Assembly: GCF_048593235.1 (NCBI RefSeq)
Contig: NC_133619.1
Coordinates: 640,624,558-640,688,557, forward strand
Direction of reading: 5' to 3'
DNA from: Sminthopsis crassicaudata
Taxonomy: Eukaryota
Length of the DNA: 64,000 nucleotides
Part shown: positions 2,782 to 41,200 of the stretch, piece after piece
Position numbering within the stretch: position 1 is the stretch's first letter
Layout of the letters: each line of letters begins with the position of its first letter
Made by a program: the position numbers and the translations under genes
Notes under the pieces: model-generated
The model's database searches: none
The model's input: the letters and a program-made list of their open reading frames with translations, nothing else
Told to the model about the DNA's origin: nothing

Positions 2782-4105
2782 GCCTTCCCCGTCATCCTCC
2801 CCAGCTCGGGCAGGAGCAGCCGTGTGTTCTGACAACAGGGGCTCAGCCCAAGTCTAGAATCCTTCCGAGAGGCTGCTGGGACAAACCCCAGCCCGGAGGA
2901 CGCCCTCCCCAAGTCTCTGAAATCCCAGAGCCCGACTGCAACAGCCAATAAATTATACATCGGTCAATTTCCTCAATCGGCCAATGTCTTTTCTCGAATT
3001 CTCTCCATCCCTCTCATGCTCATCTTGTCCTTCACACCTGGGCTGGGTCCTCGGCTCCTCTGGGAATTTTCAGACCCCAAGGGGAAGTCTTTGAGCCTGA
3101 CATTCTCTTTGAAGACTCAGGAGATGGGGCCTGGGGCTGCTTGGGAGGGGAAGGCAGCTGGGGAGTCTTGGGGTTCAGGAGTCCTGAGTTGCTATTGGGC
3201 TAAACCGAGCCCACATCTTGTTCGGAACCTGGCGCTGGTCCTAGGCTGCTGAAAATGGCTTAGGCTGAGCTGATGGGCCGAAGGGCTCCACGGCTGCACG
3301 GGACGCCTTACCTCCCATTCCGGGAATCCTCTCTGAGCACCTCCAACAGCGGCGAGCTCTCCACCTGGAACTTCTCAAGCTGTCACACACCGTATGTAGG
3401 CACAGAATCATGGGAGGGTTTTGCAGTCGGGACTTCCATTCAAATCCTAGGTTGTTTCCCCATCCCATCTCACTTCCTAGCTCTGTGACCTTGGCCTTAA
3501 TCTCTTTAGACTTGTTTCCTCATCTGTCCAAGGAGGATGCCTTAATTTCTCAGCACTTTTAACCTTCAGTCTCGCTCCAACCCTTTCCATTCATTTAAGA
3601 AAACCAAGAGCTATGGAAGAAAATGGACCCGGCAAAGAGCACCCAGGCGAATTTTCTTAGAAGAGAGAGACAAATGATGAGAGAAACAGAGACAGAGAGA
3701 GAGAGAAAAACCACAAGGAGAAGCAGAGGGGAAAAGGAGAAGAGAGAGACAGAGACAGAGAAACAGAGACGGGAGAGGGAGGACAGGTAGAGAGGAGAGA
3801 GAGAGGGGGGTAGAACAAGGAGAGAGACATTCATGTATGTGACTGACATCTCTCTAGTAGGCCATGGGTTTCCCTAGACTGTGAACTCCTTAAATAGAAA
3901 GAGACCGTGTCTTATTTACCTCAGTTTCCTGTATGGAACCCTGTGCTCAGTGGTAGTTCAGTAACTGTTTGCTGAAAGAATCAAGGGCCAATCATTTGGT
4001 CAGTGGGGGGACCCATCTCTCCTTTCCCCTCCCCCCTCGGGCTCCACTCATGAGGTCACCCCAGTGGGCATTGTTGGCCTGGGTCCCTGCTGGTGTTACC
4101 CGGCT

Positions 4106-4243
4106 GGGCGGGGCCAGCCAATCAGCCGCTAGCCCCTCTTATAATGGCCCCTAGCAACGGGGTATGAGCCCAGGCAAACGGGGAGAGACCCCGTGGGCGG
4201 GGAGAGTCTGAGGGGTGTGGGAAATTCCTCTGTGAATGTGAGT
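4106..4243 (+). promoter_or_regulatory. Putative IRGC promoter and non-coding first exon: GC box, CCAAT (NF-Y) box, RFX X-box-like site, splice donor
   Basis: GGGCGGGG 4106-4113, CCAATCAGC 4118-4126, CCCTAGCAAC 4149-4158, donor AAT|GTGAGT at 4238. Matching acceptor at 6530-6531 just before the IRGC ATG. IRGC is known to have a non-coding first exon and testis expression. Confidence 0.6.
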
Positions 4244-6538
4244 TGATTTGGGGGGAAATGGTACTCAATGTGGGTGAGATAGGGCAATTCCGAGGGAAGA
4301 AGGGAAGAGAAGTCCCGGGGACATAGACGCTAGGTCCAATTCTCCCGGTTGCCCTTTGGATCCCCGTAGTCTCGGCTACCCAGAACCCGTCACGCCGCGG
4401 GGGGGAGGAGGGAGCCCAGGGTTAGGTAGGAAGAGCTCAACCTCATTAAGTTCTCCAATAGACCCCGAAAACTTGGGAGAGGAGAGGTCTGGTCAGGGCC
4501 AAGAGGACGGAGTCCAATTCTCCGTCTCGATGGACCGGCTCGGCCTGCCCCTCGGTTCCTGGAGAAGAGAGACTGGAGCGGGTTTGAGGCACAGTCCATA
4601 TGGGCCCAATCGCCCGGGCTGAGCTCTCTTGCCTGTGCTAGCTGTCTCAGAGGTGCTAGGCCCGTTGTAAAAACGAGGGCAGGAGAAATCGGGGGGCTGT
4701 GGCCAAGTCCCGCTATAATCCCCACAGTTCCTTCTCCAGCTGTTACGATCTGTCCCTCCAATACCCCAGACCCGGCCCAGAAAAGAGAACTCCCCGGCGT
4801 GGGGAGTTTGAGCCCAATCCCCTCTATCAATTCAAATAGCCCATGGAGGGAAGTTTGGGGTGTGGGAAGGGTTTCCTGTGAGGTCCCCACTGAATACCCA
4901 GAGCTCTCTACGGAAGAGGCACTTTGTCCTGGGGCCCTCCGGACTGCTTATTGAAACACTCGGAACTGTGTTCGAGCGAGGCGGAGGGAGGTGGTGGCCA
5001 GGCCGGGGTGGGAGGGAACCAGTCTTAGCCCCTGCAGTATCTCAAATGAGTAGGGGTCCGGGTGAGTGGGAGAGGGGCAGAGAAACGAGACCGTGTGATT
5101 GTGTTGACTTCCTATGGACTGTGCTTGCTGCTTAGACGATTCTGGGCCCCCCATGCGCCAGAGGAGGGGAAGAGAGTTCTAAGTGTTGGAAGGAGGGGTT
5201 AGGGTCCCCTCCCTTCATTTCCATACTCAATCATACTCAAACCCCCCCCTCCAAAAAAAAAAAAAAACACAAACAAACAAAAACTCCAGAGCCATCCATA
5301 AGATTGGGAGAAGGAAGTGTCTCTGTGTCTGTTAGAGCTGGAGAGGAGGAAGGGGGTGTGCAGCTAATTCCCCAGCCTCTTTGTAGAGACTGACTGATAA
5401 ACTGTCACTCCTGGACCCCATGCTTACCGGGGAGAAACGAGTCTGAGTTCCCCACATTCTACTGTTCATATATCTCCTCTCACCTCAGACCTCCTGCTCT
5501 TCCATCTCCTGGGGACCCTGCCATAGTCCAGAAACAAAGGGAAAATGGAGGGGGTCCAGAAAGGGAGGAAGACACGGGGTGGGGAGATGCAATGGAACCT
5601 AGAGAGGAAGACACGGGGTGGGGAGATCCAATGGGTGGACTATCTCAGGGGATCATCCCTCCCTTTGGTAATAAAGGGGAAAATGGGAGTCAGAACCATG
5701 GGCTCCTAGGCCTCTCGGACAGGAAGGGACCTGTAGTCTGACCTCCAGTATTTTGCAGAGAAGGAAACTGAGGCCTAGAGTAGGAGAGATGATTAAAAGC
5801 TGGGACCCACAATCCTGGCATTGGCGCCATGTTGGGGTCGGACAAGCTGCCTTTCACGATTTAACCGTGAAAGGCTGTGGGCTTGACAGTAGCTCCCCCC
5901 TGAGTGGGAGTGTCCTTCCTCTCCTGTGGCCTCAGTTTCCCCTCCCTGTAGAAGCTGGTTCTCCGGCATGTGTTCTGCTTCTAGCGCCGGGCCCACCGAT
6001 TTGCTCTGAGAGTCCCTCCATTGCTTTCTTTACCTATGGGGAAAGTGGGAGGAGGATCCCTGCTTTCCTGCAAAGGGGGTAGGAAGCGGGCGTGGGATGA
6101 GGCTGGGGAAAGGCCCCCAGTGTAAGGAGGCTCCGGCTCGCTGGAACACACGGGAGCCTGTGGGGGCGGGCAGGGGGCCGGAGAAGGCAGAGACTAGGAG
6201 GAGAGAAGAGGGGAACAGAGGCCGCAAGCGGCCGAGTGGGAGCCGTTGTCAGGGACGGAGAGGGTCCGGTAGGAGAGCCGCCAGGCTGGCGCTTCCGAGG
6301 CTACCTCCGGCAGCGTAGCCTGGATAAGGGGGGGAAGGGGGCGGGCCGCCTTTACCGCTAACCGTGTCTGTGTCCGTGTCTGTGTCTGTCCGTGTCCGTG
6401 TCCGTGTGTGTGTCCGTCTCCGTGTCTCTCTCCTCGGCCCGCTCTCAGGGCCTAGGTGGTGTGAGCGGCCTGCCCCCTACCCCAAGGAGCACACGCATCG
6501 AGACTCCCCCACTCCCCCCCACTCTCCCCAGGGGCGCA

Positions 6539-7936
6539 ATGGCGTCCAAGTCACAAGCCCCCCCGACCGAGGAGGAGAGCACCATCCTCATGGCTAAGGA
6601 AGAGCTCGAAGCTCTCCGGACGGCCTTCGAGCTGGGGGATATCCCGAAGGCTGCCTCCCGCCTCCGGGAGCTTCTGGGCTCCGCCGAGAGTAGCCGCCTG
6701 GATGTGGGCGTGACCGGCGAGTCCGGGGCCGGCAAGTCTTCCTTGATCAACGCCCTTCGAGGGATCGGGGCCGAGGATCCCGGCGCGGCTCGGACTGGCG
6801 TCATCGAGACCACTACCCAGCCCACCCCCTACCCCCACCCCCAGCTGCCTGAGCTCATGCTGTGGGACCTGCCAGGGGCCGGCTCACCCGGCTGCCCAGC
6901 CGACAAGTACCTGAAGCAGGTAGACTTTGCTCGCTACAATTTCTTCCTCCTGGTCTCTCCCCGCCGCTGTGGGGCCGTGGAGACCCGGCTGGCGACCGAG
7001 ATCCTCCGTCAGGGCAAGAAATTCTACTTCATCCGCACCAAGGTGGACGAGGACCTGGCGGCTTCTCGCACCCAGCGCCCCTCGGGCTACAGCGAGAGCG
7101 CTGTCTTACAGGAGATCCGAGACCACTGCGCGGAGCGCCTGCGAGCCGCCGGCGTCCAGGACCCCCGGATCTTCCTCGTGTCCAACCTGTCGCCGGCGCG
7201 CTACGACTTCCCCCTGCTGGTGGCCACCTGGGAGCGGGAGCTGCCGGCCCACCGCCGCCACGCCGGCCTCCTGTCCCTGCCCGACATCTCCCTGCAGGCC
7301 CTGCAGAAGAAGAAGGATGCCCTGCAGGAGCAGGTGCTGAAGACCGCGCTGGTGTCCGGGGTCATCCAGGCCCTGCCCGTGCCCGGGCTGGCGGCCGCCT
7401 ACGACGACGCGCTGCTCATCCGCTCCCTGCGGGGCTACCACCGCAGCTTCGGCCTGGACGACGACTCCCTGGCCAGGCTGGCCGAGCAGGTGGGCAAGCA
7501 GGCCGGCGACCTGCGCTCCGTGATCCGCTCGCCGCTGGCCACCGAGGTGTCGCCCGAGGCGGTGCTGCGCATGTACGCCCAGTCATCGGACGGCGCCATG
7601 CGCGTGGCCCGGGCCTTCGAGAAGGGCATCCCCGTGTTCGGGACCCTGGTGGCCGGGGGCATCTCCTTCGGGACCGTCTACACCATGCTCCAGGGCTGCC
7701 TTAACGAGATGGCCGAGGACGCGCAGCGTGTCCGGATCAAAGCCCTGGAAGAGGAGGTCACCTCCCCTGGCTCCGACGCCCGCCTCGACGTCGCCAGCGG
7801 GCCCGGGTTGGAGAAGAGGGGGGCAGGCGAGGGCGGCGGGGAGGATCCTCCAATCTCAGCCCGCCGGAAGCTTGGACTGCTGCTCAAGTACATTCTGGAG
7901 AGCTGGAAAAAACGGGATGGGGTCGAAGACAAATAA
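6539..7936 (+). CDS. IRGC: Immunity-related GTPase cinema (interferon-inducible GTPase 5), 465 aa, single coding exon
   Basis: MASKSQAPPTEEESTILMAKEELEALRTAFELGDIP... closely matches human IRGC as I recall it, along the whole length. G1 GESGAGKS, G3 WDLPG and G4 RTKVD are intact; ends KLGLLLKYILESWKK. The ORF-track start at 6392 is an intronic GTG; the real ATG is 6539, after the acceptor at 6531. Confidence 0.97.
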   Translation: MASKSQAPPTEEESTILMAKEELEALRTAFELGDIPKAASRLRELLGSAESSRLDVGVTGESGAGKSSLINALRGIGAEDPGAARTGVIETTTQPTPYPHPQLPELMLWDLPGAGSPGCPADKYLKQVDFARYNFFLLVSPRRCGAVETRLATEILRQGKKFYFIRTKVDEDLAASRTQRPSGYSESAVLQEIRDHCAERLRAAGVQDPRIFLVSNLSPARYDFPLLVATWERELPAHRRHAGLLSLPDISLQALQKKKDALQEQVLKTALVSGVIQALPVPGLAAAYDDALLIRSLRGYHRSFGLDDDSLARLAEQVGKQAGDLRSVIRSPLATEVSPEAVLRMYAQSSDGAMRVARAFEKGIPVFGTLVAGGISFGTVYTMLQGCLNEMAEDAQRVRIKALEEEVTSPGSDARLDVASGPGLEKRGAGEGGGEDPPISARRKLGLLLKYILESWKKRDGVEDK

Positions 7937-8107
7937 AAACGGCCACCTCTCCCCCAAAGAAAGAAAACCCCCCTCCTGACCACTCCACCCCACCATCCCC
8001 CATCCCCATTCCCCCACCCCTGTCCCCTGTCCCTACCAAAAAAAAATTCATGTGAAGAAACCAATGGAAGGCTCCCGACTGCTTCCACACCGGCCCGGGC
8101 CCGCGCG

Positions 8108-8490
8108 GGAGGGAGGGAGTGGGGTTGGGATGGAGCGGGGGGACGGGGCAGGGGGAGGGAGGCGGGGAGGGAGGAGGGAGGGAGGGGGAGGAGGAGGGAG
8201 CGGTGTTGGGATGGAGCGGGGGGCGGGGCAGGGGGAGGGAGAGGGGTTGGGATGGAGGGGGGGCGGGGCGGGGGGAGGGAGCGGTGTTGGGATGGAGCGG
8301 GGGGCGGGGCAGGGGGAGGGAGAGGGGTTGCAATGGAGCCCCCAGGGGGCGGGGCGGAGGGAGGGAGCGGTGTTGGGATGGAGCCCCCAGGGGGCGGGGC
8401 GGGGGGAGGGAGCGGTGTAGGGATGGAGCCCCCGGGGGGCGGGGCGGGGGGGAGGGAGGCGTATTGGGATGGAGCCCGCGGGGGGTGGGG
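8108..8490. repeat. G-rich minisatellite (about 41-45 nt unit)
   Basis: Repeated ggagggagcggtgttgggatggagc(g/c)n ggggcgggg units, roughly 8 copies; source of several spurious Gly/Pro ORFs. Confidence 0.85.
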
Positions 8491-8764
8491 GGGAGAGCCC
8501 GTTCAAGGGCCGGTTTCACCTCCTCTATCCCACAGACGCGTCTTTTCGGGGAAGGGGCCACTGGGGAGACGGGATTCCCGGCGGGGTGCAAGCGTACGAG
8601 GGGGATTAGAACTGGGGAGCCTGCAGAAAGGCGTCCCTTTGGGGCGACCTTCCCCCCCCATCTCTCCCTCCCAAAGGGTGTCCTTTGATGGCAATCCTCT
8701 GGCTCCACGCCAGCACCCCGCCCCCTTCCTCGAAGATTCCCCCACCCCCTCCCCGAGGAGCCAA

Positions 8765-8913
8765 CCAATCAGCATTCGTTTCTCAATACAATGGGCCCTA
8801 GCAACAGGTGTGGCCGAGAAGCCAACCGAGTCGGTGGGGATAAGATGCTCCGCGACTAGAAGAGGAAGCAGAAGAAGGGCCAGGGTCAAAGGAAGGCCCT
8901 GCTAAATGTGAGT
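8765..8913 (+). promoter_or_regulatory. Second CCAAT + X-box promoter module and putative non-coding first exon, probably of the downstream IRG paralogue
   Basis: CCAATCAGC 8765-8773, CCCTAGCAAC 8796-8805 (same 22-nt spacer as at 4118-4158), donor AAT|GTGAGTT at 8908. Candidate acceptors at 14091-14092 and 14099-14100, before ATG 14135. Confidence 0.55.
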
Positions 8914-9787
8914 TAGGGAGGAGGCTGACGAGGCAGGATCGCCCCCGGCCCCCAACTCCCTGCCCCCGCCCCTCTGTACCCTTCCACGGGAAGATGAGAG
9001 AGGCGTTTCAGCCCCTAAAAACTCCCCAAACTCCCCCCAAGTCGCCCCAGGCCAGTGCGGCTCAGCCCCAGCCTCTTTCATGTTCCATCTCTGCAAGGGC
9101 AACTCTGGGGAAGGGTAGTTTTTTGGGTGGGGGAGGAGAAGGCGCACGAATCTAACGGTGGGCAGGAGGTTTTGTGCGGGTGACTGGAGTGTGTGTGTGG
9201 CCTCTGCGGTGATTTCAGCCGGTCCGGCTGGGAAGTTCTCGAGGATGATTGTGAGTGTGATTTAGGTCGGTGATTACTGTGACTTTGGGATGGCCACTTG
9301 GTGTGGCTGAGAGTGGACAGAGAATGACCTTTTGGCCGGGCTTTTACTTGTGTGTGTATGAGAAAAAGAGACAGAGACAGAGCCAGAGACAAAGAGGCAA
9401 AGACAAATAGACAGACAGAGACAAACAGACAGAGAGACAAGAGACAGAGAGACAGAGAGAAAGAGAGAGACAGTGTGTGTGACAGCATCACTTTGACTTC
9501 TGCCTCCTGGGGCCCCCCCTCTGTTAGGCCAGGCGAGACTCACCCCTTGTCCTCTTGTTGGGGACTTGGAGAAGAACGCCAACAGTCAATAAGCATAAGC
9601 ACCCACTGTGTGCCAGCCATACAGAGAAGGGCAAAAGCCAGTGCGTCCTCCCAAGGAACTTACGGTCTAAGGGAGAGTGGCACAAACCCAGCCCCAATCG
9701 AGTTAGAGACACGAAAACAAAGCGCTGGGACTGAGAGGGGTCACAAAAGGCTTCCTGGAGAGAGGGAGATTTTAGCTAGAACTTTTT

Positions 9788-9987
9788 AAAAAAAATTATT
9801 ATAGCTTTTTATTGACATTTGCAAGGCTAATTTTTCAGCATTGAGCCTTGCAAAAACTTCTGTTCCAATTTTTCCCCACCTTCCCCCCATCCCCTCTCCC
9901 AGATGGCAGATAGACCAATACATGATACATATGTTAAAGTATATGTTACATTTAATATAATGTATACATATTTATAGAGTTATCTTT
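9788..9987 (-). mobile_element. L1-type 3' end fragment
   Basis: AT-rich insert ttatagctttttattgac...ccttccccccatcccctctcccagatggcag...catatgttaaa; reverse complement resembles the L1 3' end at 62796-63300. Confidence 0.5.
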
Positions 9988-11639
9988 TAGCTGGAACTTG
10001 AAGGAAGCCAGGAAGCAGAAGTGAGGAGAGCGGAGGACCAACCAGGAGGCCAGGGCCCGTCAACCGAAGGAAAGAGAGGAGGAGGCTCATCAGATGTAGA
10101 AATCAAACCAAGAGAAAGCAGACGAGGTGAAGGACAGGGAATGAGGCCTTAAGAGTCTTCCAGCTTTACAGCTTTATGGGATCCATTTAGAGCTAGCTTG
10201 TTTAGAAATCTCACTTTACAGATAAGGAAACTGAGGCTCAGAGGAAGGAAAGATCACATGGAGAGAGCCAGGGGATCCTAGAGCTACAGCGGGAAGGGAC
10301 ATTCAAGGCCATCTAGTCATATTTGCTCACTTTACAGATGAGGAAACTGAGACAGAGGGGAAGTAGTTTGTCTGGTCAGTTCAGGTGGCAAGCAGAGGAT
10401 TTGAATCCAGGACCATTGACAAACTTACCCCTTTTCCACTGTCTCCTGGTAGTACATGGATTACTATCCCTATTTTATGGAGGAAACTAGTCAGCCAAGG
10501 GAGGAAAAAGAATCGTTCAAGATTAACCACAGCTTGTGAAATTTGGAGGCAGGATAGGTGCCCTAGCATTCTCATCTCAAGCTTGGGATCCAGAGCAGCC
10601 AAATCTGGACCAACCTGCTTCCATCCAGGTGGACTTGAATCAGGAGAGGAAGAAAATAGTTAGTCCATCCGAGTTGGACGAGACCTTAGGGGCCGATTAG
10701 GGCCAACCCCTTTATTTTACAGAAGAAACCATTACTGAAAAAAGGCGGCAGGGAACTTGTCCAAGAAAATCCAAGACAGAAACTTGGAGCTCCAAACTCT
10801 TGTAAGGTCCCGTCTCTCCACCTGGGACTGGCCCCAGGAGCACTGGGGATCTAGGTGCCTCAAGACACTCTGGGTCTCAGTGCCTTGATGGGGGTTGGGT
10901 CAAAAGCTGGGCTCCCTGTCTCAGGCAGGCAGGGCTCCAGGGGTCAGGAAGTATTAATACTTCAGGCAAGTGGAATGAGCTGGCTGAGGTGAGAAGGTGG
11001 AGGAAGGCCCCGCTTGTTTTCTCTTCGAGCTCACTGGCCCTAGTTCCCAGAAGTCTTTCTCCCCAGGCACATCTAGGAAGCCCTCTGGAGAAGGGGACAC
11101 CATTTGCTGGGAGCTGGGATGTATGTGTGGGAAACCCCAGCTCTGGCCCTCTTCTGTGCCCTTGTCAAAGCACACACGACAGAGGGAGGGGCTCTCTTCT
11201 CACACTGGGGGCCATGATCAAGTGCATTTACACTTGGAACTCCCTGCTCTGACTCGACTACACACTCTCACTATTAGAAGTCAAGGGTAGATTATTAGAG
11301 AAACAGGCAATGTGGCAGAAGCCGATGGAGAACTTGCCTTGGAATCATATTCGAGTCCTGTGTTCCATATATGAGCAAGTTTCTGGAGCGGTTTTGCCCC
11401 AATGGAACAGTCCCCCAAATAAGGAAAGCTCTGCCCTCAGCATTATTTTGAACAGAATCTGAACTCACCCAGGTAGGAACTCCCAGTACTCGAAAGCAAT
11501 CTGCCCAAATCAATTTGCACCATTCTTCGGGAAAGAATAACCCGAGGGCGTTTGTCCAGGGTCACCCAGTGCTTCTCACACCATTTAAGTGTGAGTCAGG
11601 TGTTACAATGGATTTCCATCCTGACTGAGTACTTCAGTC

Positions 11640-11850
11640 GTCTCCGGGATGTCCGATCCCTCTGACCCCATTGGGAGTTTCTTCGGCAAAGATGCTGAGA
11701 TGGTTTGTCCTTCCTTTTTCCAGCTTATTTACAGGTGAAACTAAGACAGAGTTAAGTGTTTTCCCATCACCCGGCTACTAGGTGTCTGAAACCAGATTTG
11801 AATTCAGGTCCTTCTGACAGAGCTATCCATGTGGCACCTCACTGCCCCTG
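11640..11850 (-). mobile_element. MAR1/MIR-type CORE-SINE
   Basis: ccattgggagtttcttcggcaaagatgctgagatggtttgtcc...ttacaggtgaaactaag...gtgtctgaaaccagatttgaattcagg; typical CORE-SINE minus-strand signature. Confidence 0.65.
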
Positions 11851-12327
11851 TTACACAAACTCTCGTTTACTGACAGCCACTGTGGACCCGAAAGGGACGC
11901 AAGGCCGGAGCTTTCTAAGTCCAAGGCTGGAACTTTCTAAGCCTGAGGCCGGAGTCCATGTCCAAGGCCCTAACTTTCCAAGCCCAAGACCAGAACTTTT
12001 CAAGCCCGAGGCCAGTCTTCTGCGCACATTACAGAGGCAGCTTCTGTACAGTGAGACACGGTCATGCTCTGGAGTATAATGAAGTAGGAAATGTCAGGAG
12101 AAATACCGTTCCCTTTACTGGGTTTCTCCTCACATACCTTCACCCTAAGTGTTACTTCTAAAGCCCTTTTACCAGAACCCAGGCTCTGTTTTCAGCCAAC
12201 TGGGATATCCTGGGATGTGCCTGGGAATGAGAGGCTTCAACTCTTGAGGATCAGCCTCTATGAGCTTCCAGAGGCTCATTACCAGATTTGCCACAGGGTG
12301 AAAATCATCCCCTAAAATGGAGGGGGT

Positions 12328-12483
12328 TAGGGGCAGATAGGTGGGTGCAGTGGATAGAGCACCAACCTGGAAATCAGAAGGATCTGAGTTCAAATCTGGC
12401 CTCAGACACTTAATATTTCCTAGCTCTGTGACCCTAAGCAAGTCACTTAACCCCAATTACCTCAGCAAAAAATAAAATAAAAT
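12328..12483 (+). mobile_element. WSINE1-like SINE
   Basis: gggcagataggtgggtgcagtggatagagcacc...ctgagttcaaatctggcctcagacactt...aaaaataaaataaaa. Confidence 0.8.
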
Positions 12484-14134
12484 AGAGGAGGTTGTCATCT
12501 GTACTGGTAGAGACAGCCCCACCAGGTACTCCTCAAGGTAATAAGAAACAGCTATTATTATTTTTCAATAATTCAATTCACTTCTCTTTCCATTCAACTA
12601 AGTTTTTAAGTACTTATTGTGCATCTTAGAGTATAGAGACAGAGACACGGAGACAGAGAAACAGGGAGAAAAGGAGGGAGGGAAGAGAGACAGAGACAGA
12701 GAGACAGAGACAGAGATAGAGACAGAGACAGAGGCAAAGAACGAGACAGAGAGACAGAGACAGAGACCCAGAGAGAGCGAATCTCTCTTGACCAGAGGGG
12801 CTGGAGAAGCCCGAAGGGGAGTGGTGAAAAGTGACACTGAGGGCAGGAAGATTTATCTCAGAGGCAGCTGGTTCGAGGTGACAGCTGGGGGAACAGCTGG
12901 GCTGGGAAGGGTGGTTGTTTTGAAAGGACTGGGGGAGTTTGTTAGCAGGAGGGATGGTGAGGTGATTCCATGGATGCTCCCTCTCAGCTCAGCTCCTCAC
13001 GCTCCCCTCTGCCCTAGGACCACCCTCATCGGCCCACTTCTTGAGGAGTCCCTCCAGAGAAAGCCCCTCTCCCCCGTTTTCTTCTCTGCATTGTTCCCCT
13101 GGGCTCCCATCACCCCTGAAGGATGTCTCTGATCCCCAGACTCACTGGGTGACCAGATTGTTCCCCAAGCCTCCACTTTCCCATCTACAAAATGGAGCCA
13201 ACAATGGCCCTACATACATCCCAGAACTATGTGAGGAGCTCATGAGGTCATGGACGTGCACTGGTGTGGTGGCCAGAATAATGTAAACCCTTATTATTAT
13301 CGTTAATGCTTCGATGGGAAGGATGCTGATGAGAGGACAGACTTTTGGCCTCAGGGTCCAGGGTGACCCAAAGGGGAATGACGTTTAGTGAATCACATGG
13401 TCTCAAAGCCTTAATGTCTTCACCTGTAAAATGGGACAATAGGATCCATGTTACAGCACTATTAGGAAGATCACTGGGATTATTTTGTAGCCTTGAAAGC
13501 AAAGTGACCAGGCTGGAGACTCCCCGATAACAGGCCTGGGTTTTTCAAACCAACTCAATGCAAGGAGTGGTGGTTAGTACGGCGGGGGCCTTTGCAGGGC
13601 TAAGCAGCCTGACGGGGCTCACAAGGAGAGCGTGTGAGTGACAGGACTCGGCTGAGGAGGGGGAGGCAGGAGGGATGAGGAAGGGATGTGTGCAGTTTGT
13701 TACAGACCAGGTGGGACTGAAGAGAGCAAGGAAAAAATAACCCTCTGGTGCCAGGAGGGAGCGGCTGCCCAGCCTGGAGCGGGCCCTCCCTCCACTTCCC
13801 ACCTTCTCCCCTACTTGGGGACCCCACGGGGCCTCGGGGAATGAATGGATGAAAACGTGTTTATGGCCTTGTGTGGGCGTGGAACACAAACGGGGTGCAG
13901 TCACGAGTGGGGGCCTAGACCACGGGACGTCAGAGCAGAGGGGACCTGGAACACGGGATGTAGACCTGAGCGGGCCTTAGAACATGGGGTGTAAACACAA
14001 GGGGGACCTGGAACGCGGGTGCCAGAGCCGGCCCTTTCTCGGCCCCTCCCCGCTGGGCGCCGCTCACGCCGCCCTCCCTCCTCGCCCCGAAGGTCACCAG
14101 CCTCCCCTCGTTGACACTTCCACCTTTCCCCGCG

Positions 14135-15526
14135 ATGGCGGCCCCGACGACCCAGGAGTCTAAGACCACCCTGACTCTGAGCCCGGAGAAGATGGCGTCC
14201 ATCGGCGAGGTGTTCCAGGGAGACAGCCTGTCGGCGACCTCCACCAAGCTGCGCTCCACCCTGCAGTCCCTGGAGAACGTGCGGCTGGACATCGCCGTGA
14301 CGGGAGGGGCGGGCTCGGGCAGGTCCACCTTCGTCAACTCGCTGCGGGGCCTGGGCGACGAGGACCTGGGCTCGGCGCAGACCGCGCTGGGCGGGACCAC
14401 GTCGGTGCCCACGCCGTACCCGCACCCCCAGTACCCCAACGTCATCCTCTGGGAGCTGCCCGACGTGGGGGCCGCCTCCCTGCAAGCCGAGCAGTACCTC
14501 GAGAAGGTCCTGTCCAGCCGCTACGACCTCTTCATCCTGCTCAGCGCCGAGCGCTTCAGCCCCGGCCACGCGCGCCTCGCCCGCGCCCTCCAGGCCCGGG
14601 AGAAGCCCTTCTACCTGGTCCGCTCCAAGGTGGACGTGGACGTGGCCGCCTCCCGCCAGCGCAGACCCAGCACCTTCTCTGAGGAGGGCGTGCTCATGGA
14701 CATCCGCGAAAACTGCCGTTCCTACCTGCAAGGTGAGGGCCGGGGCGCCGGAGGGCCGGACGCGTGGGGCGGGGGGCTCGGGGAGCGACGGGAGGGGCCG
14801 GGGGCTCGGGGAGCGACGGGAGGGGCCGAGGGCTCGGGAAGCGACGGGAGGGGCCGGGGGCTGGGGAGCGAAGGGAGGGGCCGGGGGCTCGGGGAGCGAC
14901 GGGAGGGGCCGGGGGCTCGGGGAGCGACGGGAGGGGCTGGGGGCTCGGGGAGCGACGGGAGGGGCCGGGGGCTGGGGAGCGACGGGAGGGGCTGGGGGCT
15001 CGGGGAGCGACGGGAGGGGCCCGGCACGCAGGGAGCGACGGGAGGGGCCGGGGACACGTGAGGGCCCAGGGATCATGATCCCAAAGCTGGGGGCGGCAAC
15101 CCCCCAACCTCTGCCTTCCGTGGGCACTCCTGGAGCCAGGGGAGCGAGCCCACAAGCACTCGGGACTGAGGCGGACCGGGTAGAAACCGCGCTGCAGACT
15201 CAGTGACAGATGGGCATCTGGGCCGGACCTGGACCCTCTAGGGACAGGGAACTCACTCCCTTCGTACCCCTAATATCAAATGGGCCCCCAAAGGGTCCGA
15301 ACAGGGACTCCAGCGGCCTTCAGCCGACCCTCCTTTAAAGGTCTCGGAGCTCTCCCTGGGAAGGATGTCCATATCCTTAATATCACAGAATATGAAATCC
15401 CAAGCCTGGAAATCCCCTGGGGGCTTATCAGTTCGAGTCATACATGAACAATGTATGAGCAATACTTCTCCCTGCCCTCAACTTTAGGCAAGTCATTCTA
15501 TTTCTCTGGACTGCAATTTCCTCATC

Positions 15527-18500: not shown

Positions 18501-20034
18501 GATGGCAACGGCGAGGGCCGGAGAAAGTCCTCTGGGGACTGTGAGCAGGAGAGAAGTCGGAGCGCCCACTGTGGGCACGGGCATGGGGCCGGGGGAGAGC
18601 TCCACCAGGCAGGGGTTTGTGGACCATCAGGGGTGAGGAAGCGCTTAATTACCGAGGACAGAGGGTTGAATTTGAACTCGGGACTCTTAGCTTACAGAGC
18701 GAGAGTGATGGTTCTGTGTGCACCGGAGGGCAGAACCAGGAGCCGAAGGGGCAGAGAGGCGGATTTCAGCTGTATGCTGGGGGAAGGAGGGAGGACTCTG
18801 AGTCAGAGATCCTGGTTTCTAGGCCTTCTCTGCCTCGTGAATAAATCACAAATGTGAGGGGTCGTCGCCTCTGAGGTATTTTCTATTTTAAATCCAGGAT
18901 CCTGATAATAGCTCTCCTGATGTAGAATGTCTGTTCAGGTGGTGAGTTCCCCGCCATGGGAGGTATCCAAGGCGGGGGATCACTCATTCCCGGTTTTGGA
19001 GTTGTGTGCAGGTCAGGGCCTCCAAGATCCCTCCTGACTCCAGGACTTAGTGGTTCGGGAGAAGAAAAGCAGGTAGTGAGTGCCCCGTGCCAGCAGGTGG
19101 ATGGAGGCCCCGCTCAGGGATGAGTCCTCCTCCTCCCCTCTGAAGTTCCTGGCCAGGACTATGATTCTGGAACAGCGTTCCTGTCCCCCAGATTTGAGGA
19201 GTCCTGACTCTCAAATCGGGGTGCAGCAAGAGAGCACCTAGAGCATTCTGGGAGGCCTTCCGGGACAGGGGGCTGGAGGGCCCCCAAAGCTGGGCTTCCT
19301 GAGGGGGGGCTTTGGAGGTGCCCGAGCTCTGGCCCGAGGGCGCCCACAAGTCAGAGCCCGGGTACCTCGGCGCCCTGGGAGGGCCCAGGCAGACGCAGGG
19401 ACCCTTGTCTTCCTCAGCGGAGGGGGTCACCAAGCCCAAGGTCTTCCTGCTATCCACGTTCGCGCTGGACAGGTTTGACTTCCAGCTGCTCAGCGAGGTC
19501 ATAGTGAGGGACCTGGAGAGCTCCAAGCGCCACGCCTTCCTGCTGGCCCTGCCCAACGTGTCGGCCGCCATGCTGGACAAGAAGGCCGGCTCCATGCTCC
19601 AGCACATCTGGCTCGTGGCCACCGTGGCCTGCACCAACAACCCGCTGCCGGTGCCCGGGGTGCCCGAGGTGGCCTGCGACCTGGGCCTGCTCGTGCGGGC
19701 CCTGTCCGGCTACCGCCGCGGCCTGGGCCTGGAGGCGAGCAGCCTGCAACGGCTGGCCCAGCGCACCGGCGGCTCTCTGCAGGCCTTGCACAGCAGGGTG
19801 TGCGGCCCGCTGTGCGAGGCGAGCTCCCCGCAGGTGATCGACTTCCTGGGACGCGCCTGCGGGAGCACCGCGGCCACCTTCGCGCAGGAGCTGGCGTCCC
19901 TGCCCGTGCTGGGGGTCCTGGCCTCCTGCAGCTTCTCCTTCGCCACCGTCTACCAGATGCTCCGCGCCTACCTGGACAAGGCCACAGCGGAGGCCAAGAA
20001 AACCCTGAGCCAGGCCTTGCCCACGGGCCAGTGA
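14135..20034 (+). CDS. Second IRG-family (p47) GTPase paralogue, two coding exons, 404 aa, with degenerate catalytic motifs (G1 GGAGSGRS)
   Basis: Exon 14135-14732 (MAAPTTQESK...LDIAVTGGAGSGRSTFVNSLRGLGDED...PYPHPQYPNVILWELPDVG...RSKVDVD...IRENCRSYLQ) splices phase 1 (CAAG|gtgagg ... ttcctcag|CG) to exon 19418-20034 (AEGVTKPKVFLLS...RHAFLLALPNVS...PVPG...GLEASSLQRLA...SFSFATVYQML...). 598+617=1215 nt with no internal stop; colinear with the neighbouring IRGC. Confidence 0.9.
14771..15055. repeat. G-rich minisatellite (about 28 nt unit) just downstream of the IRG paralogue 5' splice site
   Basis: gggggctcggggagcgacgggaggggcc, about 10 copies. Confidence 0.9.
15697..15845 (-). mobile_element. 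WSINE1-like SINE
   Basis: Poly-T then ggctgaggcacttggggttaagtgacttgcccagggtcacac...tttgaactc...ctggtgctc. Confidence 0.8.
16171..16313 (+). mobile_element. WSINE1-like SINE
   Basis: gggcagctaggtggggcagtggatggagcaccagccccgaagtcagggggacctgagttt...gcaagtcacttcacccc; a further 3' partial copy at about 16975-17047. Confidence 0.8.
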
Positions 20035-35200: not shown

Positions 35201-38200
35201 GGCCGACAGCAGGGACATGACCATTGACTTGCCCGTTCCTTGCAGACCCAGGACCCCGACCACCAGCACGTCCGTCTGATCCAGCAGGTACTGAGGAGAG
35301 CGCAGTGCAGGACGTCAGCCCCCCCCTCCGACTGCAGAGGCGCCGCTCGTCCCACCACAGGCGGGGTGCTGCTGGAAGAGCCACCTGGGCAGCCCCCCCA
35401 GCAGGTAGGTTCTCCCCCCCGTCCCACCCAGGTCCTGCTCCTAAAGGGGCTCACCTCGATGGCGCTGTCGCACCAGTTCATCTGGTCGTCCACCAGCTTG
35501 ATGCTGTGCTTCATGCGCTCGGGGGGCAGCAGCTTGGCCTGGCCCACCACGGCTGGGAAGGGAGAGAGAAGGGGGCCGCCTGTCACCCGGACCAGGGGCT
35601 GGTTCTGCCTTTCTGTATATCTGCACGGCTTGGCACAGTGCCGCACACAGCAGGCACCTAATAAATGCACACTGGCTGGCCAATAAAGGGGAGGCCGCGG
35701 CCCGAGGGAAGGCCGAGCCGAGTGCAGAGTGGGGCGGCCTTTGTTCCTCCCAGGGTGAGCCCACCTCCCCCCCCCTTTTCCCTTCTGAGGAAAACAGGCC
35801 CCAGTCCCTGGAGCGGTAAGCCTGGGCAGTGGCCGGGCAGGTGCCCTGGGGGGAGGGACTGCCCCCCAGCGACTCTGACTGCAGCACCCTCCCTCCCAGC
35901 CTCTCCCTTACCTGCGAGTGGGTCCCAGGGAGTCTCCCAGAAGGACGGGCCAGGATGAGTCCTCCCAGATCCCTCTTGCTGGCTGTTCCACATGCCCACT
36001 CGCCCCCTGCCCCTCTCCATCCTCCCCCCTGCCCCCCAATGGGCCAGCCAGCAGTGCCCAAGTCTCCCCCAGGACCTGGCAGGGCTCCGTTCTCTATAAA
36101 TGTCTACCTTGGTGGGTCTCACGCCAGGCACTGTCCTCCACGGAGCCCATGTTGAGGCAGGACCCCGGATGAGCCTCCCTGGCAGGACCCCCGGCCTCAC
36201 TGCAGAATCGTGCCCCCCCATTTCAGGATCTCCCTCCTTTGGGACCTACGGGTCTGTCTGCACTGAGTCCCTGGGGAGGACCCGGCCCGGGCCCAGAGGG
36301 CCACTTTTCACATTAAGGATGCGTCTCCCAGACAGGAGGTGATGGCACTGGGCGTGCGGTGGCCCGGCCTCTCCCCGGGTAATCTCGGCCATGCCATCGC
36401 ACGTCTGCGTGCAGATACGTCACACAAAGGGTCCTTCCTTCGCCTTTTATTGGAGGCAGAGGCCGGCCCTGAGCGTGTCCCCCTCCCCGTGCACACAGAA
36501 GTGCCCCAGGCTCCCTTGCTGTGCTGACTGGGGGCCCCACCCCCCATCCGAGCATCTGCCACAGGAACAGGCATGGTGGGGTGTGGAGGGCAACCTCCAG
36601 AGCCGCCTACTGACACATCGTGCACCTGCTCACCCCGCTTTGTTCCGAGCACCCCCTAGTCGCAGCACCGTCTCCGTGTGCCCCCCACTTACGGTCCAAG
36701 GCGGCGGGCGTCGTGGTGCCCATGCCCCGGTTCTGTATCTGGTAGACGGGCTGGGTGGGCCGCTGGCCTTCCTTCTCCCCCTTGGGGGGGGTGGGTACCA
36801 CTGGAGGGGGCGGCGTGGCCCCTTCAAGGGCCGGGGCTCCTGCCCCCCCGGCCGGGCCCTTGGCTTCCTCCCGAGGCTTCATCAGAACAATAGGTTTGTC
36901 CAGAGGAGCAGGGGCCTGGAGAGCAGTGGGAGCCGGCGTGGTCGGGGGCGGAAGTTTGGACTGAGGAGGAAAAAGAAGCTTCAATCCCTGCGGCCCCCCC
37001 AGAATACCCCGGGCCCCCCAAGGACTTGCCCACAGCCTTACCCGCTCTGCTGGAGGCTTGGAGAGAATGATGGGCGTTTTCTGGATGATTGACGTCCCTG
37101 CCTCCTCATTGCCATCCTGTGAAAGGGAAGGAAGGGCGCCAGAGATCAAGGGCCTGGGACGGCTCCCCAGTACTGCCGCACCCTGTCAAGACCCCACTCC
37201 AGCATCCATCCCTCTAGCTCTCCTCTATCCCATCACACCCCTTGAGCCATCCTCTCTCCCCGGCCAGAGAAGACTGATGTAGTGCAGGGTGTCCCCCCCC
37301 ACACACACACACACACTCCCAGAGGTCAAGGAGGGACGAGCCACCCCTTCCTCCTTGGAGGACTGTAATCAAATCACCTGGGGTGCTTTAATCCCCTCTC
37401 CTCAGGGGGATGGCAACGTCACGACTCCCCTCAGCGTGGGAAGCTGGAGGAGAGCCTGACTTCTGAATGCAGGCAGATCCCCTGACCTCCCCGACCCCCC
37501 TGCCCAGCCAAAAGTGGAGCCCGAAAAACCATAGGGAAACTCAATGCGAAACTGGAGGGAGCGACCCCCTCCAGCCCAGGAGTGCACAAGGGTCAGCCAG
37601 GAACCCAGGACATGGTGACTAAAGGTGTCGAGGGGCCGCCAGAGGCGGGGGCCTCAAGGGCGCACCCTGGGGATGCTCAGGCCCAGAGGCTCGTCCCAAG
37701 AGGTCCTGAAGGGCAGCGGTCCCTGGAGGCTTCGAGGGCCTAAAGTGGGCCTGAGCACGCACTAGAACTGAGGCCGGGGGGAGGCCCTGCAATCCCAAAG
37801 AGAGCAGGGGTCAGCGTCCTGCCAAGCGATGAGGCCCCAGAGCCTTCAGCATGAGCGAGCAGAGACTCTGAGGAAAATGGAACTTCCAGAGGCACGGTCG
37901 TCCAGAAAAACGGGCAAGGGTGAAAAACCAAAGCTCGGCAGGAAGAAGCGGGAGAAGACAAAGTCTGCAAGCTGGCCCGGACCCGGGACCCTGGCCAGCC
38001 AGGACGGCGCAGACCCGCCAGCGCCGGAAGGAGCGGGACGGAATCAAAGCAGCAGAGACTCAGGAAGCCAAGGGCTGATGCCCGGAACCCAGGTGGAAGA
38101 TCAGGGGGCCGGGGGCAGAGTTCAAGGGTCCCTGGGTGTGCCAACCATGCTCCCAAAGCAGCCAGACACCGACTCTCTAAGATCCTACGTGGAGGATGCC

Positions 38201-41200
38201 CTGACACCGAGGGCACGGCCGGAACACCCGCAGGACCCGGCCCAGAGAGTCTGAGCCCAGCGGGACCGAGCCCAGAGGGACCCGGCCCAGCGGGACCTGG
38301 CCCAGCGGGACCCGGCCCAGAGGGTCTGAGCCCAGCGGGACCGAGCCCAGCGGGACCCGGCCCAGAGGGACCGAGCCCAGAGGGACCTGGCCCAGAGGGA
38401 CCTGGCCCAGAGGGTCTGAGCCCAGCGGGACCGAGCCCAGAGGGTCCGAGCCTAGCGGGACCGAGCCCAGAGGGTCCGAGCCCAGCGGGACCCGGCCCAG
38501 AGGGTCTGAGCCCAGCGGGACCGAGCCCAGAGGGTCTGAGTCCAGAGGGACCCGGCCCAGCGGGACCCGGCCCAGAGGGTCCGAGCCCAGTGGGACCGAG
38601 CCCAGAGGGTCCGAGCCCAGCGGGACCCGGCCCAGAGGGACCCGGCCCAGAGGGTCTGAGCCCAGCGGGACCGAGCCCAGAGGGACCCGGCCCAGAGAGT
38701 CTGAGCCCAGCGGGACCCGGCCCAGAGGGTCTGAGCCCAGCGGGACCGAGCCCAGAGGGACCCGGCCCAGCGGGACCTGGCCCAGCGGGACCCGGCCCAG
38801 AGGGTCTGAGCCCAGGGGGACCGAGCCCAGCGGGACCCGGCCCAGAGGGACCGAGCCCAGAGGGACCTGGCCCAGAGGGACCCGGCCCAGAGGGTCTGAG
38901 CCCAGCGGGACCGAGCCCAGAGGGTCTGAGTCCAGAGGGACCCGGCCCAGCGGGACCCGGCCCAGAGGGTCCGAGCCTAGCGGGACCGAGCCCAGAGGGT
39001 CCGAGCCCAGCGGGACCCGGCCCAGAGGGTCTGAGCCCAGCGGGACCGAGCCCAGAGGGTCTGAGTCCAGAGGGACCCGGCCCAGCGGGACCCGGCCCAG
39101 AGGGTCCGAGCCCAGCGGGACCGAGCCCAGAGGGTCCGAGTCCAGAGGGACCCGGCCCAGCGGGACCCGGCCCAGAGGGTCCGAGCCCAGTGGGACCGAG
39201 CCCAGAGGGTCCGAGCCCAGCGGGACCCGGCCCAGAGGGACCCGGCCCAGAGGGTCTGAGCCCAGCGGGACCGAGCCCAGTGGGACCAAGCCCAGAGGGT
39301 CCGAGCCCAGCGGGACCCGGCCCAGAGGGTCTGAGCCCAGTGGGACCCGGCCCAGAGGGTCCAGGCCCAGCGGGACCCGGCCCAGAGGGACCCGGCCCAG
39401 AGGGTCTGAGCCCAGCGGGACCGAGCCCAGCGGGACCCGGCCCAGAGGGACCGAGCCCAGAGGGACCTGGCCCAGAGGGACCCGGCCCAGAGGGTCTGAG
39501 CCCAGCGGGACCGAGCCCAGAGGGTCTGAGTCCAGAGGGACCCGGCCCAGCGGGACCCGGCCCAGAGGGTCCGAGCCCAGCGGGACCGAGCCCAGAGGGT
39601 CTGAGTCCAGAGGGACCCGGCCCAGCGGGACCCGGCCCAGAGGGTCCGAGCCCAGTGGGACCGAGCCCAGAGGGTCCGAGCCCAGCGGGACCCGGCCCAG
39701 AGGGACCCGGCCCAGAGGGTCTGAGCCCAGCGGGACCGAGCCCAGAGGGACCCGGCCCAGAGGGTCTGAGCCCAGCGGGACCAAGCCCAGAGGGTCCGAG
39801 CCCAGCGGGACCCGGCCCAGAGGGTCCAGGCCCAGCGGGACCCGGCCCAGAGGGTCTGAGCCCAGCGGGACCCGGCCCAGAGGGTCCAGGCCCAGCGGGA
39901 CCCGGCCCAGAGGGACCCGGCCCAGAGGGTCTGAGCCCAGCGGGACCGAGCCCAGAGGGACCCGGCCCAGAGGGTCTGAGCCCAGCGGGACCCGGCCAAG
40001 AGGGTCCAGGCCCAGCGGGACCCGGCCCAGAGGGTCTGAGCCCAGCGGGACCCGGCCCAGAGGGTCCAGGCCCAGCGGGACCCGGCCCAGAGGGTCCAGG
40101 CCCAGCGGGACCCGGCCCAGAGGGACCCGGCCCAGAGGGTCTGAGCCCAGCGGGACCGAGCCCAGAGGGTCCGAGCCCAGCGAGACCCGGCCCAGAGGGT
40201 CCAGGCCCAGCGGGACCCGGCCCAGAGGGTCCGAGCCCAGCGGGACCCAGCCCAGAGGAACCCGGCCCAGAGACCAGAGGGCAGCAGGCCCCAGACCACA
40301 GGGACCCAGCCCAGAAAAGAAGCCTGTGTGTCCAGAAGGGATCATGCCAGGTAAGGTGGAGGCTCCGGACCATAACCAGGAAGGGTGGACCCTGCAAAGC
40401 CAAGGAGGGAAAAGCCCGGAGCTGGGCAGGACTGGGAGGTACAAGAAGAGGCCGGAGCCTGGAAGGAGCGGGGGCGGGGCCGGCCCGCTCTGGGCGCTCT
40501 GGAACCTGCAGGCTTTCCAAGGGCTTTCTGCGAGTCCCGGGCGGTTCTGAGGGCTGGGAAAGGCAGAGACGCAGGCAGAATGGGGGAGGAAGGGGTGCAC
40601 TGGGGCCGTCCTCAAGGGCACGGGCCGGGCAGTTTCCATCGGGATCTCCAGAGCTTTGCTCTTAGACGAAAGCTGGGCCTCCGAGGCCTCTCGTTCCGGG
40701 TGTGACTGGGTGTGAATGTGCATGGACGGGGGGCATGTCTGCGCCTGAGGGGAGTCTGACCGAGCGGCCCGGGGGTGTCCCCTTAGGTGTGTGCCTGTCT
40801 GAGGCTGTCCGCGCCTGCATGGGCACATCTGAGCGAGGGACGGCTGCCCCCCCACCGCCCGGCCTTCTCTGCAGCATCGGCTGCCCGCCCCGGCTCCCCC
40901 CCACAAGCCCAGCTCTGTGCCCTGTGGCATCCTGCCGGCAGAGCCCTCCTGCAGCTCGGCCCCCTCCGGCCTTCTCAAACGACATACAAATCTGCAGACC
41001 CTCTCCCTTTGCCCCCCAACCCCAGACTGCCGTCCCCTGGGGGGGTCACAGGTTCCTGAGGTGGGAGCTCCTCCCTGCAGCTGGAGCCGCACACACACTC
41101 ACCCGCCGCTCGCGCTCCCGGTCCCAAGGGGCTCCATAGTCGCGCTCCCGGCCCCCGGGCCCGGACAGGTTCTGGGGGCCCCCGGAGCCCGGCTCCTTCC

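Follow-up and report, generated by a model that had tools for sequence, protein, structure and literature searches.

A CCAAT/X-box module repeated upstream of IRGC and its sister GTPase gene: a probable duplicated promoter and first exon in mammals

Introduction

Two tandem IRG genes in a 64-kb stretch of DNA from the dunnart Sminthopsis crassicaudata (hereafter the window, meaning the whole analyzed stretch) are each preceded by the same composite of a CCAAT box and a presumed half-site of an RFX-type X-box. One gene is IRGC; the other, downstream of it, is called here the sister gene, and the composites with their surroundings are called module 1 (at IRGC) and module 2 (at the sister gene). 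The locus raises the question of what the repeat represents: a coincidence of common promoter motifs, a part of one long transcription unit, or a regulatory region duplicated together with its gene. The observation itself is real, non-random, and deeply conserved. Our preferred explanation, which the sequence comparisons support well and to which we assign an estimated probability of about 0.7, is that both modules constitute a duplicated promoter plus first exon, kept by selection and serving IRGC and the sister gene, respectively.

IRGC is expressed in testis and spermatids of mouse and human, with the onset in round spermatids; it is not regulated by interferon (Bekpen et al., 2005, PMC1297648), and in mice it is required for the integrity of the sperm fibrous sheath and for motility (PMC9232189). 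Orthologues of the sister gene are annotated only as "interferon-inducible GTPase 5-like" (IIGP5-like); a partial, novel sequence closest to IRGC was already noticed in the dog by Bekpen et al. (2005, PMC1297648).

Results

The motif pair in the dunnart window

The scan of both strands of the window, allowing at most two mismatches, yields two matches of CCAATCAGC-N22-CCCTAGCAAC, at 4118–4158 and 8765–8805, both on the plus strand, against 0.00 expected from shuffled sequences. Thus, the double occurrence with constant spacing reported in the preliminary description is reproduced, with 22 nt between the parts in both cases, and the 18-mers compared there indeed differ at two positions only (T/C and C/G). 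The X-box portion CCTAGCAAC occurs twice in the window, once per module. The donor AATGTGAGTT, described earlier as common to both copies and located 80–103 nt further on, is found at 4235–4244 and 8905–8914 and nowhere else (0.04 matches expected); the donor GT at 4238 and 8908 lies 80 and 103 nt past the X-box of modules 1 and 2, respectively. By itself, CCAATCAG is not rare (six occurrences in the window vs. three expected). The CpG observed/expected ratio is 0.35–0.56 in both modules; hence, neither is a CpG island, which fits the expectation for tissue-specific promoters. The features of the two modules and genes, all on the plus strand, are as follows.

4048..4247, plus: module 1, conserved block, candidate promoter and first exon of IRGC; 95–100% dunnart–Dromiciops identity
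4051..4058, plus: octamer TGAGGTCA, resembling a cAMP response element (CRE), 67 nt 5′ of the CCAAT box; identical in three marsupials; the counterparts are TGAGGTCAAC in both echidna modules and TGACATCA in placental module 1
4069..4075, plus: SOX-like CATTGTT (reverse of AACAATG), kept in marsupials
4118..4126, plus: CCAAT box of module 1, CCAATCAGC; the CCAAT pentamer is unchanged in every module 1 copy
4140..4147, plus: spacer motif TATAATGG, TATA-like or weakly SOX-like; kept in module 1 of marsupials, cat, Logan contig L005, and Fukomys
4149..4158, plus: X-box half-site of module 1, CCCTAGCAAC; CCTAGCAAC invariant in 7/7 module 1 copies
4159..4237, plus: putative non-coding first exon of IRGC; donor GT at 4238–4239; 100% dunnart–Dromiciops identity; the 5′ end may lie upstream of the X-box
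6532..7936, plus: second exon of IRGC; acceptor AG at 6530–6531, ATG at 6539, stop codon at 7934–7936
7932..7937, plus: AATAAA overlapping the IRGC stop codon
8702..8936, plus: module 2, conserved block, candidate promoter and first exon of the sister gene; 82–90% dunnart–Dromiciops identity with one dip
8765..8773, plus: CCAAT box of module 2, CCAATCAGC; found in all species whose sister gene is intact, deleted in Fukomys
8788..8794, plus: SOX-like ACAATGG in the spacer, present in module 2 of marsupials, cat, and L005; the echidna modules have the reverse complement, CATTGT
8796..8805, plus: X-box half-site of module 2, CCCTAGCAAC; the form in cat and L005 is GGTGCCTAGCAAC
8806..8907, plus: putative non-coding first exon of the sister gene; donor GT at 8908–8909; alternative donor CAG^GTGTGG at 8807/8808 (here and below, ^ marks the exon boundary)
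14093..14733, plus: coding exon 1 of the sister gene; acceptor AG at 14091–14092, ATG at 14136, donor after 14733
19417..20034, plus: coding exon 2 of the sister gene, an open reading frame (ORF) with BLAST matches to the cat and echidna orthologues

The IRGC ORF (6539–7936) encodes 465 amino acids with 97% identity to wombat IRGC and is preceded by a polypyrimidine tract and the AG at 6530–6531. The sister gene, starting at 14136, is a second IRG gene with the P-loop GGAGSGRS (the P-loop lysine is kept in the Trichosurus copy); its first coding exon ends with CAAG^GTGAGG, and the gene continues at approximately 19417–20034.

Conservation in mammals

Loci around IRGC or the sister gene, obtained by exact-protein look-ups, were scanned with a loose pattern (CCAAT, 10–40 nt, YAGCAAC). 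Exactly two matches, both on the gene strand, are seen in each of six loci of three mammalian subclasses, namely, in the dunnart and in the following five.

L002, second dasyurid (GCA_016432865.2): module 1 at 989, module 2 at 6233
L003, Dromiciops gliroides: module 1 at 7379, module 2 at 11961
L004, echidna: module 1 at 9698, module 2 at 14023
L005, placental-like Logan contig (SRR28250555): module 1 at 243, module 2 at 3974
L008, cat: module 1 at 4267, module 2 at 7894

The first match lies upstream of IRGC; the second is located 0.46–2.6 kb past the IRGC stop codon, upstream of the sister gene. Dinucleotide shuffles give 0.03–0.19 chance matches per locus, with the probability of at least two matches not exceeding 0.023 in each. 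Although the pattern allowed for 10–40 nt, no spacing other than 21 or 22 nt is observed: every therian module 1 and marsupial module 2 has 22 nt, and placental module 2 and both echidna modules have 21 nt. The CCAAT pentamer is invariant in 13 of 13 intact modules, flanked as CCAATCAG, CCAATCGG, CCAATGGG, or CCAATAAG. Of these 13, 12 have the uninterrupted nine-base stretch CCTAGCAAC unchanged, the exception being echidna module 2 with CTTAGCAAC.

Both modules form sharp peaks of conservation that end just past the conserved GTGAGT donor. The dunnart–Dromiciops identity in 40-nt windows is 95–100% in module 1 (4048–4247) vs. approximately 55–85% in the flanks, and 60–85% directly after the donor; in module 2, it is 82–90% at 8702–8820 and 8858–8936 vs. 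53–70% in the flanks. In BLAST comparisons of the dunnart with cat or L005, module 1 with its exon is the only syntenic non-coding match in 19 kb (4136–4215 and 4111–4215, E = 1e-7 and 5e-12, respectively). The check proposed in the preliminary description, conservation of module 2 in other marsupials, has a positive outcome, and the module is also conserved in placentals and one monotreme. Neither the composite nor CCTAGCAAC is found within 10 kb on either side of one alligator IIGP5-like locus; reptiles have many paralogues, and the orthology of this locus is not established.

Common origin of the modules and decay of module 2

The alignment of module 1 with module 2 within one genome gives local scores well above those of shuffled sequences in the echidna (63 vs. 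19.4 ± 2.5, over approximately 85 nt with the spacer included) and Dromiciops (34 vs. about 18 ± 2.7), and a lower score in cat (23 vs. 18.4 ± 2.3), where only the X-box end still aligns. The preliminary description called the surroundings of the dunnart motifs unalignable by eye; this is a fair statement, although the score of 32 vs. 17.5 ± 2.4 indicates similarity that is weak and yet above chance. A BLAST cross-match additionally links dunnart module 2 to cat module 1. In six genomes, both copies lie on one strand and in the same order, each 5′ of one paralogue; in echidna, dunnart, and Dromiciops, the similarity extends beyond the motifs. Both features are expected of a duplicated unit.

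The sister gene has orthologues in both platypus and echidna, in several marsupials, and in many placental mammals, among them cat, hyena, seals, mustelids, cattle, deer, pig, bats, and mole. It lies downstream of IRGC on the same strand in Dromiciops, echidna, and cat; the next gene after it in cat, on the minus strand, encodes 520 amino acids and, given its size and the gene order in human and mouse, is taken here to be SMG9. In contig L005, the sole sister-gene-like fragment (5336–5434) lies on the strand opposite to IRGC and may be an assembly artefact or a rearrangement. Given the same order and strand, the similar first exon, and the tandem paralogues, a single tandem duplication that involved the promoter, exon 1, and the coding exon would be the simplest origin. 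Judged from the sequences compared here, this duplication is older than the therian–monotreme split.

The mole-rat Fukomys damarensis (L010), a rodent, has an intact module 1 with the N22 spacing. Its sister gene appears to be lost: only a remnant of exon 2 is seen (L010 18302–18804; 31% identity, an in-frame stop codon, gaps), and no G-domain exon is detectable in the locus. The site of module 2 (L010 13500–13570, 553 nt past the IRGC stop codon) still contains the X half-site; deletion has removed the CCAAT box and the greater part of the spacer, and GGGAGT stands in place of the donor's GTGAGT. An intact module 2 accompanies an intact sister gene in the dunnart, the second dasyurid, Dromiciops, the echidna, and cat. 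The decay of module 2 together with the sister gene, with module 1 remaining intact, argues that selection on module 2 tracks the sister gene rather than IRGC.

Splice sites and transcript ends

The module 1 donor reads ..GAAT^GTGAGTT in marsupials and ..GGCAG^GTGAGTC in cat, L005, and Fukomys. The module 2 donor reads CCTGCTAAAT^GTGAGTTA in marsupials, CCTGCCACAC^GTGAGTTA in echidna, and CTGCTGCC(A/T)^GTGAGTGA in placentals; its context CCTGC..GTGAGT(T/G)A is recognizable in marsupials, echidna, cat, and L005, with the altered Fukomys donor described above. The acceptor (G/A)AAG^GTCA(C/T)C before the ATG of the sister gene is common to dunnart (exon start 14093), Dromiciops, and cat; in the echidna, where the orthologue is a single exon, the acceptor CCTCCTAG^ is found 10 nt before the ATG.

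The NCBI model of Fukomys IRGC isoform X1 uses the homologous exon 1 donor GGGCAG^GTGAGT and thus confirms the predicted donor, but the 5′ end of this model is placed upstream of the X-box. The model (P0007, L010 10001) has an N-terminal extension of 48 amino acids, 26 of them from exon 1 (MGPSNR...), with the first residues encoded by the X-box; the extension probably results from faulty annotation. Of the Logan contigs, L006 and L007 retain the acceptor of the IRGC intron, being genomic or unspliced, and L005 is genomic.

The IRGC stop codon and an AATAAA overlap (..AAA TAA A..) in five cases (dunnart, second dasyurid, Dromiciops, echidna, and L005), implying a nearly absent 3′ untranslated region (UTR) in many species; no such overlap is seen in cat, L006, and L007, where the stop codons are TGA or TAG. 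In the dunnart, this position suggests that the IRGC mRNA may end approximately 0.8 kb before module 2. The AATAAA of the five species also makes it unlikely that module 2 lies inside the IRGC 3′ UTR.

Candidate binding factors

NF-Y is the standard CCAAT-binding factor, and NF-Y and RFX cooperate at the X and Y boxes of major histocompatibility complex (MHC) class II genes and at the H1t promoter. NF-Y and RFX are plausible binders of the CCAAT box and the X-box of the modules, respectively. The fixed spacing between the two boxes suggests a contact between the proteins bound at both.

Generally, the X-box is an inverted repeat of GTTGCC with a 0–3-nt spacer (PMC2797782). The right half, (A)GCAAC with the CCT flank, is invariant in the modules except for CTTAGCAAC in echidna module 2; in the left half, 3–5 of six positions match in marsupials and the monotreme, and 5 of 6 in placental module 2. 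The element may thus be described as a good half-site or a weak full site. The RFX site of the polyomavirus enhancer is GTTGCCTAGCAAC (PMC3834807); CCTAGCAAC coincides with its right-hand 9 of 13 bases, and the placental module 2 form (GGTGCCTAGCAAC in cat and L005) matches it at 12 of 13. Since CCTAGCAAC is contained in a defined RFX site, RFX1–4 are all highly expressed in haploid cells (PMC2797782), and IRGC is a spermatid gene, the RFX reading seems reasonable. The earlier assignment to an RFX-type half-site is plausible, and a specific link to RFX2 is weakened, as mouse Irgc1 is not listed among the genes reduced in Rfx2 knockouts.

The CRE-like octamer is located 56–76 nt 5′ of the CCAAT box in marsupial module 1 and both echidna modules; TGAGGTCA and TGACATCA, the latter being the placental module 1 form, are each one mismatch away from the CRE consensus TGACGTCA. 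No such octamer is recognizable in therian module 2. Published mouse work suggests that at least one of the activators of IRGC is CREM.

SOX-like motifs occur in two places. One of them, the SOX-type C(A/T)TTGTT, lies between the octamer and CCAAT in module 1 of marsupials, echidna (CTTTGTT), and Fukomys (CATTGTT); cat and L005 have CATTATT. The spacer motif is TACAATGG in therian module 2, TATAATGG in therian module 1, and the reverse complement, CCCATTGT, in both echidna modules. It is inverted around a common GTAC between the echidna (CCCATTGT, L004 9717–9725 and 14041–14049) and therians (ACAATGGG, window 8787–8795); one half each may have survived in the two lineages from a palindrome contained in the ancestral spacer. 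A "weak Sox element" was described in the mouse and human IRGC promoter (Bekpen et al., 2005, PMC1297648), and the SOX-like motifs of the modules probably correspond to it.

Similarity to known promoter systems

The modules fit a known type, composite proximal promoters that tandem paralogues have retained, and are a solid example of it. Among specific systems, they resemble X-box promoters of testis genes (histone H1t, Alf/Gtf2a1l, Spag6, Adam5, and Pdcl2, candidate RFX2 targets; PMC2797782) in having an X-box-type motif near the start of a male-germ-cell gene. Unlike these promoters, the modules have one strong half-site at a fixed distance of 21–22 nt from CCAAT, the unit is duplicated before two paralogues, and mouse Irgc1 is not listed among the genes reduced in Rfx2 knockouts. 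In the H1t promoter, the X-box is likewise combined with an NF-Y-binding CCAAT box. CREM-tau-dependent spermatid promoters share with the modules a CRE-like octamer (approximately 40–75 nt 5′ of CCAAT), the onset in round spermatids, and, for mouse Irgc1, the listing as a direct CREM target; in contrast to them, the best conserved bases of the modules are the CCAAT box and the X half-site, not the octamer. The EP element of the polyomavirus and hepatitis B virus enhancers, the classic RFX1 site GTTGCCTAGCAAC, has CCTAGCAAC in common with the modules, with 12 of 13 bases matched by placental module 2, whereas marsupial and monotreme copies keep the right nine bases only.

The SXY promoters of MHC class II and class I genes, with the RFX5 complex on X, CREB on X2, and NF-Y on Y, contain the same three motif types: an X half-site of the CCTAGCAAC type, a Y box (CCAATCAG or CTGATTGG), and a CRE-like site, with strictly conserved X–Y spacing. 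Moreover, CCCTAGCAACAGGTG of module 2 is nearly identical to the X1 box of HLA-DRA. Compared with the canonical S-X-X2-Y order, CCAAT comes first in the modules and the X half-site is flipped relative to Y; no S/W box is seen; the CRE-like site is 56–76 nt upstream instead of being adjacent to X; and the genes are testis-expressed, not regulated by interferon or CIITA. Hence, the modules resemble SXY promoters and are not members of this class. In a far-reaching version of this similarity, an ancestral IRG gene under immune regulation would have passed on an X–Y enhanceosome of the immune type (RFX and NF-Y plus a CRE-like partner), and the core would be this enhanceosome re-used, re-wired for spermatids by replacing the RFX5 complex with germ-cell RFX factors and CREM; the spacing would then reflect an obligatory RFX–NF-Y contact that both paralogues have maintained for more than 180 million years. 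We regard it as a speculation with small chances of being correct.

Evaluation of alternative explanations

Several observations weigh against both modules being promoters with RFX-dependent cores. The argument from the decay of module 2 relies on one species and one loss lineage, Fukomys. The second half of the X-box is degenerate in most copies. In Table S2 of Kistler et al. (PMC4498915), mouse Irgc1 is marked only as a chromatin immunoprecipitation (ChIP) target of CREM reduced in Crem knockouts, and it appears in no column for genes reduced more than 2-fold in Rfx2 knockouts or for RFX2 ChIP, this concerning RFX2 and the mouse only; the RFX2 and CREM gene sets barely overlap (PMC4498915). 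Irgc1 is not found in the text of the other supplementary files of that paper, as far as this possibly incomplete text goes, and main-text literature searches for Irgc1 with Rfx2, Irgc1 with Sox30, and IRGC2 yield nothing useful. Finally, two gene models carry the motifs in transcribed sequence, so that transcription may begin 5′ of the X-box, or some transcripts may be read-through products. The coding sequence of Fukomys isoform X1 begins at the ATG of TATAATGG inside module 1; in the NCBI model P0125 of Trichosurus (927 amino acids), a linker between IRGC and the sister gene is the translated module 2 region, including the CCAAT box and the X-box, with a donor directly after the X-box.

P0125 and the Ensembl model P0002 of Myotis lucifugus (709 amino acids), both fusing IRGC with the sister gene, support the alternative that module 2 is a conserved internal exon or a downstream regulatory element of a read-through unit, the sister gene being transcribed mainly from the IRGC promoter. 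In P0125, a splice just before the IRGC stop codon leads to an exon across module 2, the donor CAG^GT after the X-box, a mini-exon, and the sister gene downstream of its ATG. This acceptor inside a normal coding exon, past the ATG, is typical of chimeric predictions. Neither dunnart nor Dromiciops has an unbroken reading frame across module 2, and no GT donor follows the Trichosurus mini-exon in the dunnart; accordingly, the linker is rejected as a real conserved coding exon. Module 2 also matches module 1 in order, strand, and spacing and has its own conserved donor, paired with a conserved acceptor 5′ of the sister-gene ATG, and the AATAAA at the IRGC stop codon in five species speaks against read-through as well. 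The fusion models are probably chimeric, though they could reflect read-through transcripts, and we consider the read-through alternative unlikely. Still less can be said for a chance or convergent coincidence of common promoter motifs: the abundance of CCAATCAG alone would allow for it, but zero composites are expected, the same pair is syntenic in six further genomes, and the echidna paralogy runs through the spacer. Together with the shuffle statistics of the loci, this refutes such a coincidence.

An alternative of a different kind leaves the duplicated promoters in place and assigns them to other factors, namely, CREM on the CRE-like octamer, SOX30 or SOX5 on ACAATG, and A-MYB on YAACNG overlapping GCAACNG, the resemblance to an X-box being incidental. 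It agrees with the listing of mouse Irgc1 as a CREM ChIP target reduced in Crem and not in Rfx2 knockouts, with the conservation of the CRE-like octamers, with the presence of ACAATG or CATTGT in all module 2 copies and in either echidna module (therian module 1 having ATAATG), with the fit of CAACNG to YAACNG in five of six lineage/module combinations, and with the weak Sox element being the only one seen by Bekpen et al. (2005). However, the nine contiguous bases of CCTAGCAAC in 12 of 13 intact modules exceed the needs of a 6-bp MYB core and match a defined RFX site, at 12 of 13 positions in placental module 2; redundancy among RFX1–4, all high in haploid cells, could mask the loss of RFX2; and the strictly kept distance from the CCAAT box to the X-box suggests that two factors bind there and interact. 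We regard this alternative as possible, though less likely than not.

Other features of the window

G-rich tandem repeats with units of approximately 30–60 nt are located between IRGC and module 2 (8100–8480) and in the coding intron of the sister gene (14740–15040), where they produce long spurious ORFs on both strands. Three copies of CCAATCAG at 42090–42231 on the minus strand, 65–69 nt apart, suggest a short tandem repeat. The region 38000–40000 has 75% G+C, an AT skew of 0.57, and overlapping ORFs of 700–970 codons on both strands; the sequence is either of low complexity, or rich in repeats, or an exon rich in proline or arginine.

Discussion

The explanation by a duplicated promoter and first exon can be outlined as follows. 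An ancestral IRGC-like gene with its proximal promoter and a short non-coding first exon would have been duplicated in tandem before the monotreme–therian split, and both promoter cores would then have been held by selection. The core would comprise the CRE-like octamer, the CCAAT box, the SOX-like ACAATG, and the X-box half-site CCTAGCAAC at a fixed distance of 21–22 nt from CCAAT. Module 1 (4048–4247) would drive IRGC, and module 2 (8702–8936) the IIGP5-like sister gene; each most likely starts a short exon of the 5′ UTR, spliced to just before the ATG (4237 to 6532 and 8907 to 14093, respectively). The CCAAT box is likely bound by NF-Y and the X-box by a dimer of the RFX family, the two cooperating in other promoters, with CREM presumably supplying spermatid-specific activation in the mouse. 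The proposal of the preliminary description that the paralogue arose together with the IRGC promoter and was retained under selection holds in view of the paralogy of the modules, the conserved donors, and the decay of module 2 along with the sister gene; joint expression of the two genes in testis would be in line with it.

For IRGC, these results provide a mammal-wide candidate promoter of approximately 200 bp with four discrete motifs; the only prior description of this promoter found in the papers searched is the weak Sox element (PMC1297648). As a GTPase gene with the same control core, the sister gene is predicted to be a spermatid gene as well. The composite element, whose internal spacing two paralogues have preserved for more than 180 million years, may be useful for the study of cooperative binding at CCAAT and X-boxes outside the MHC.

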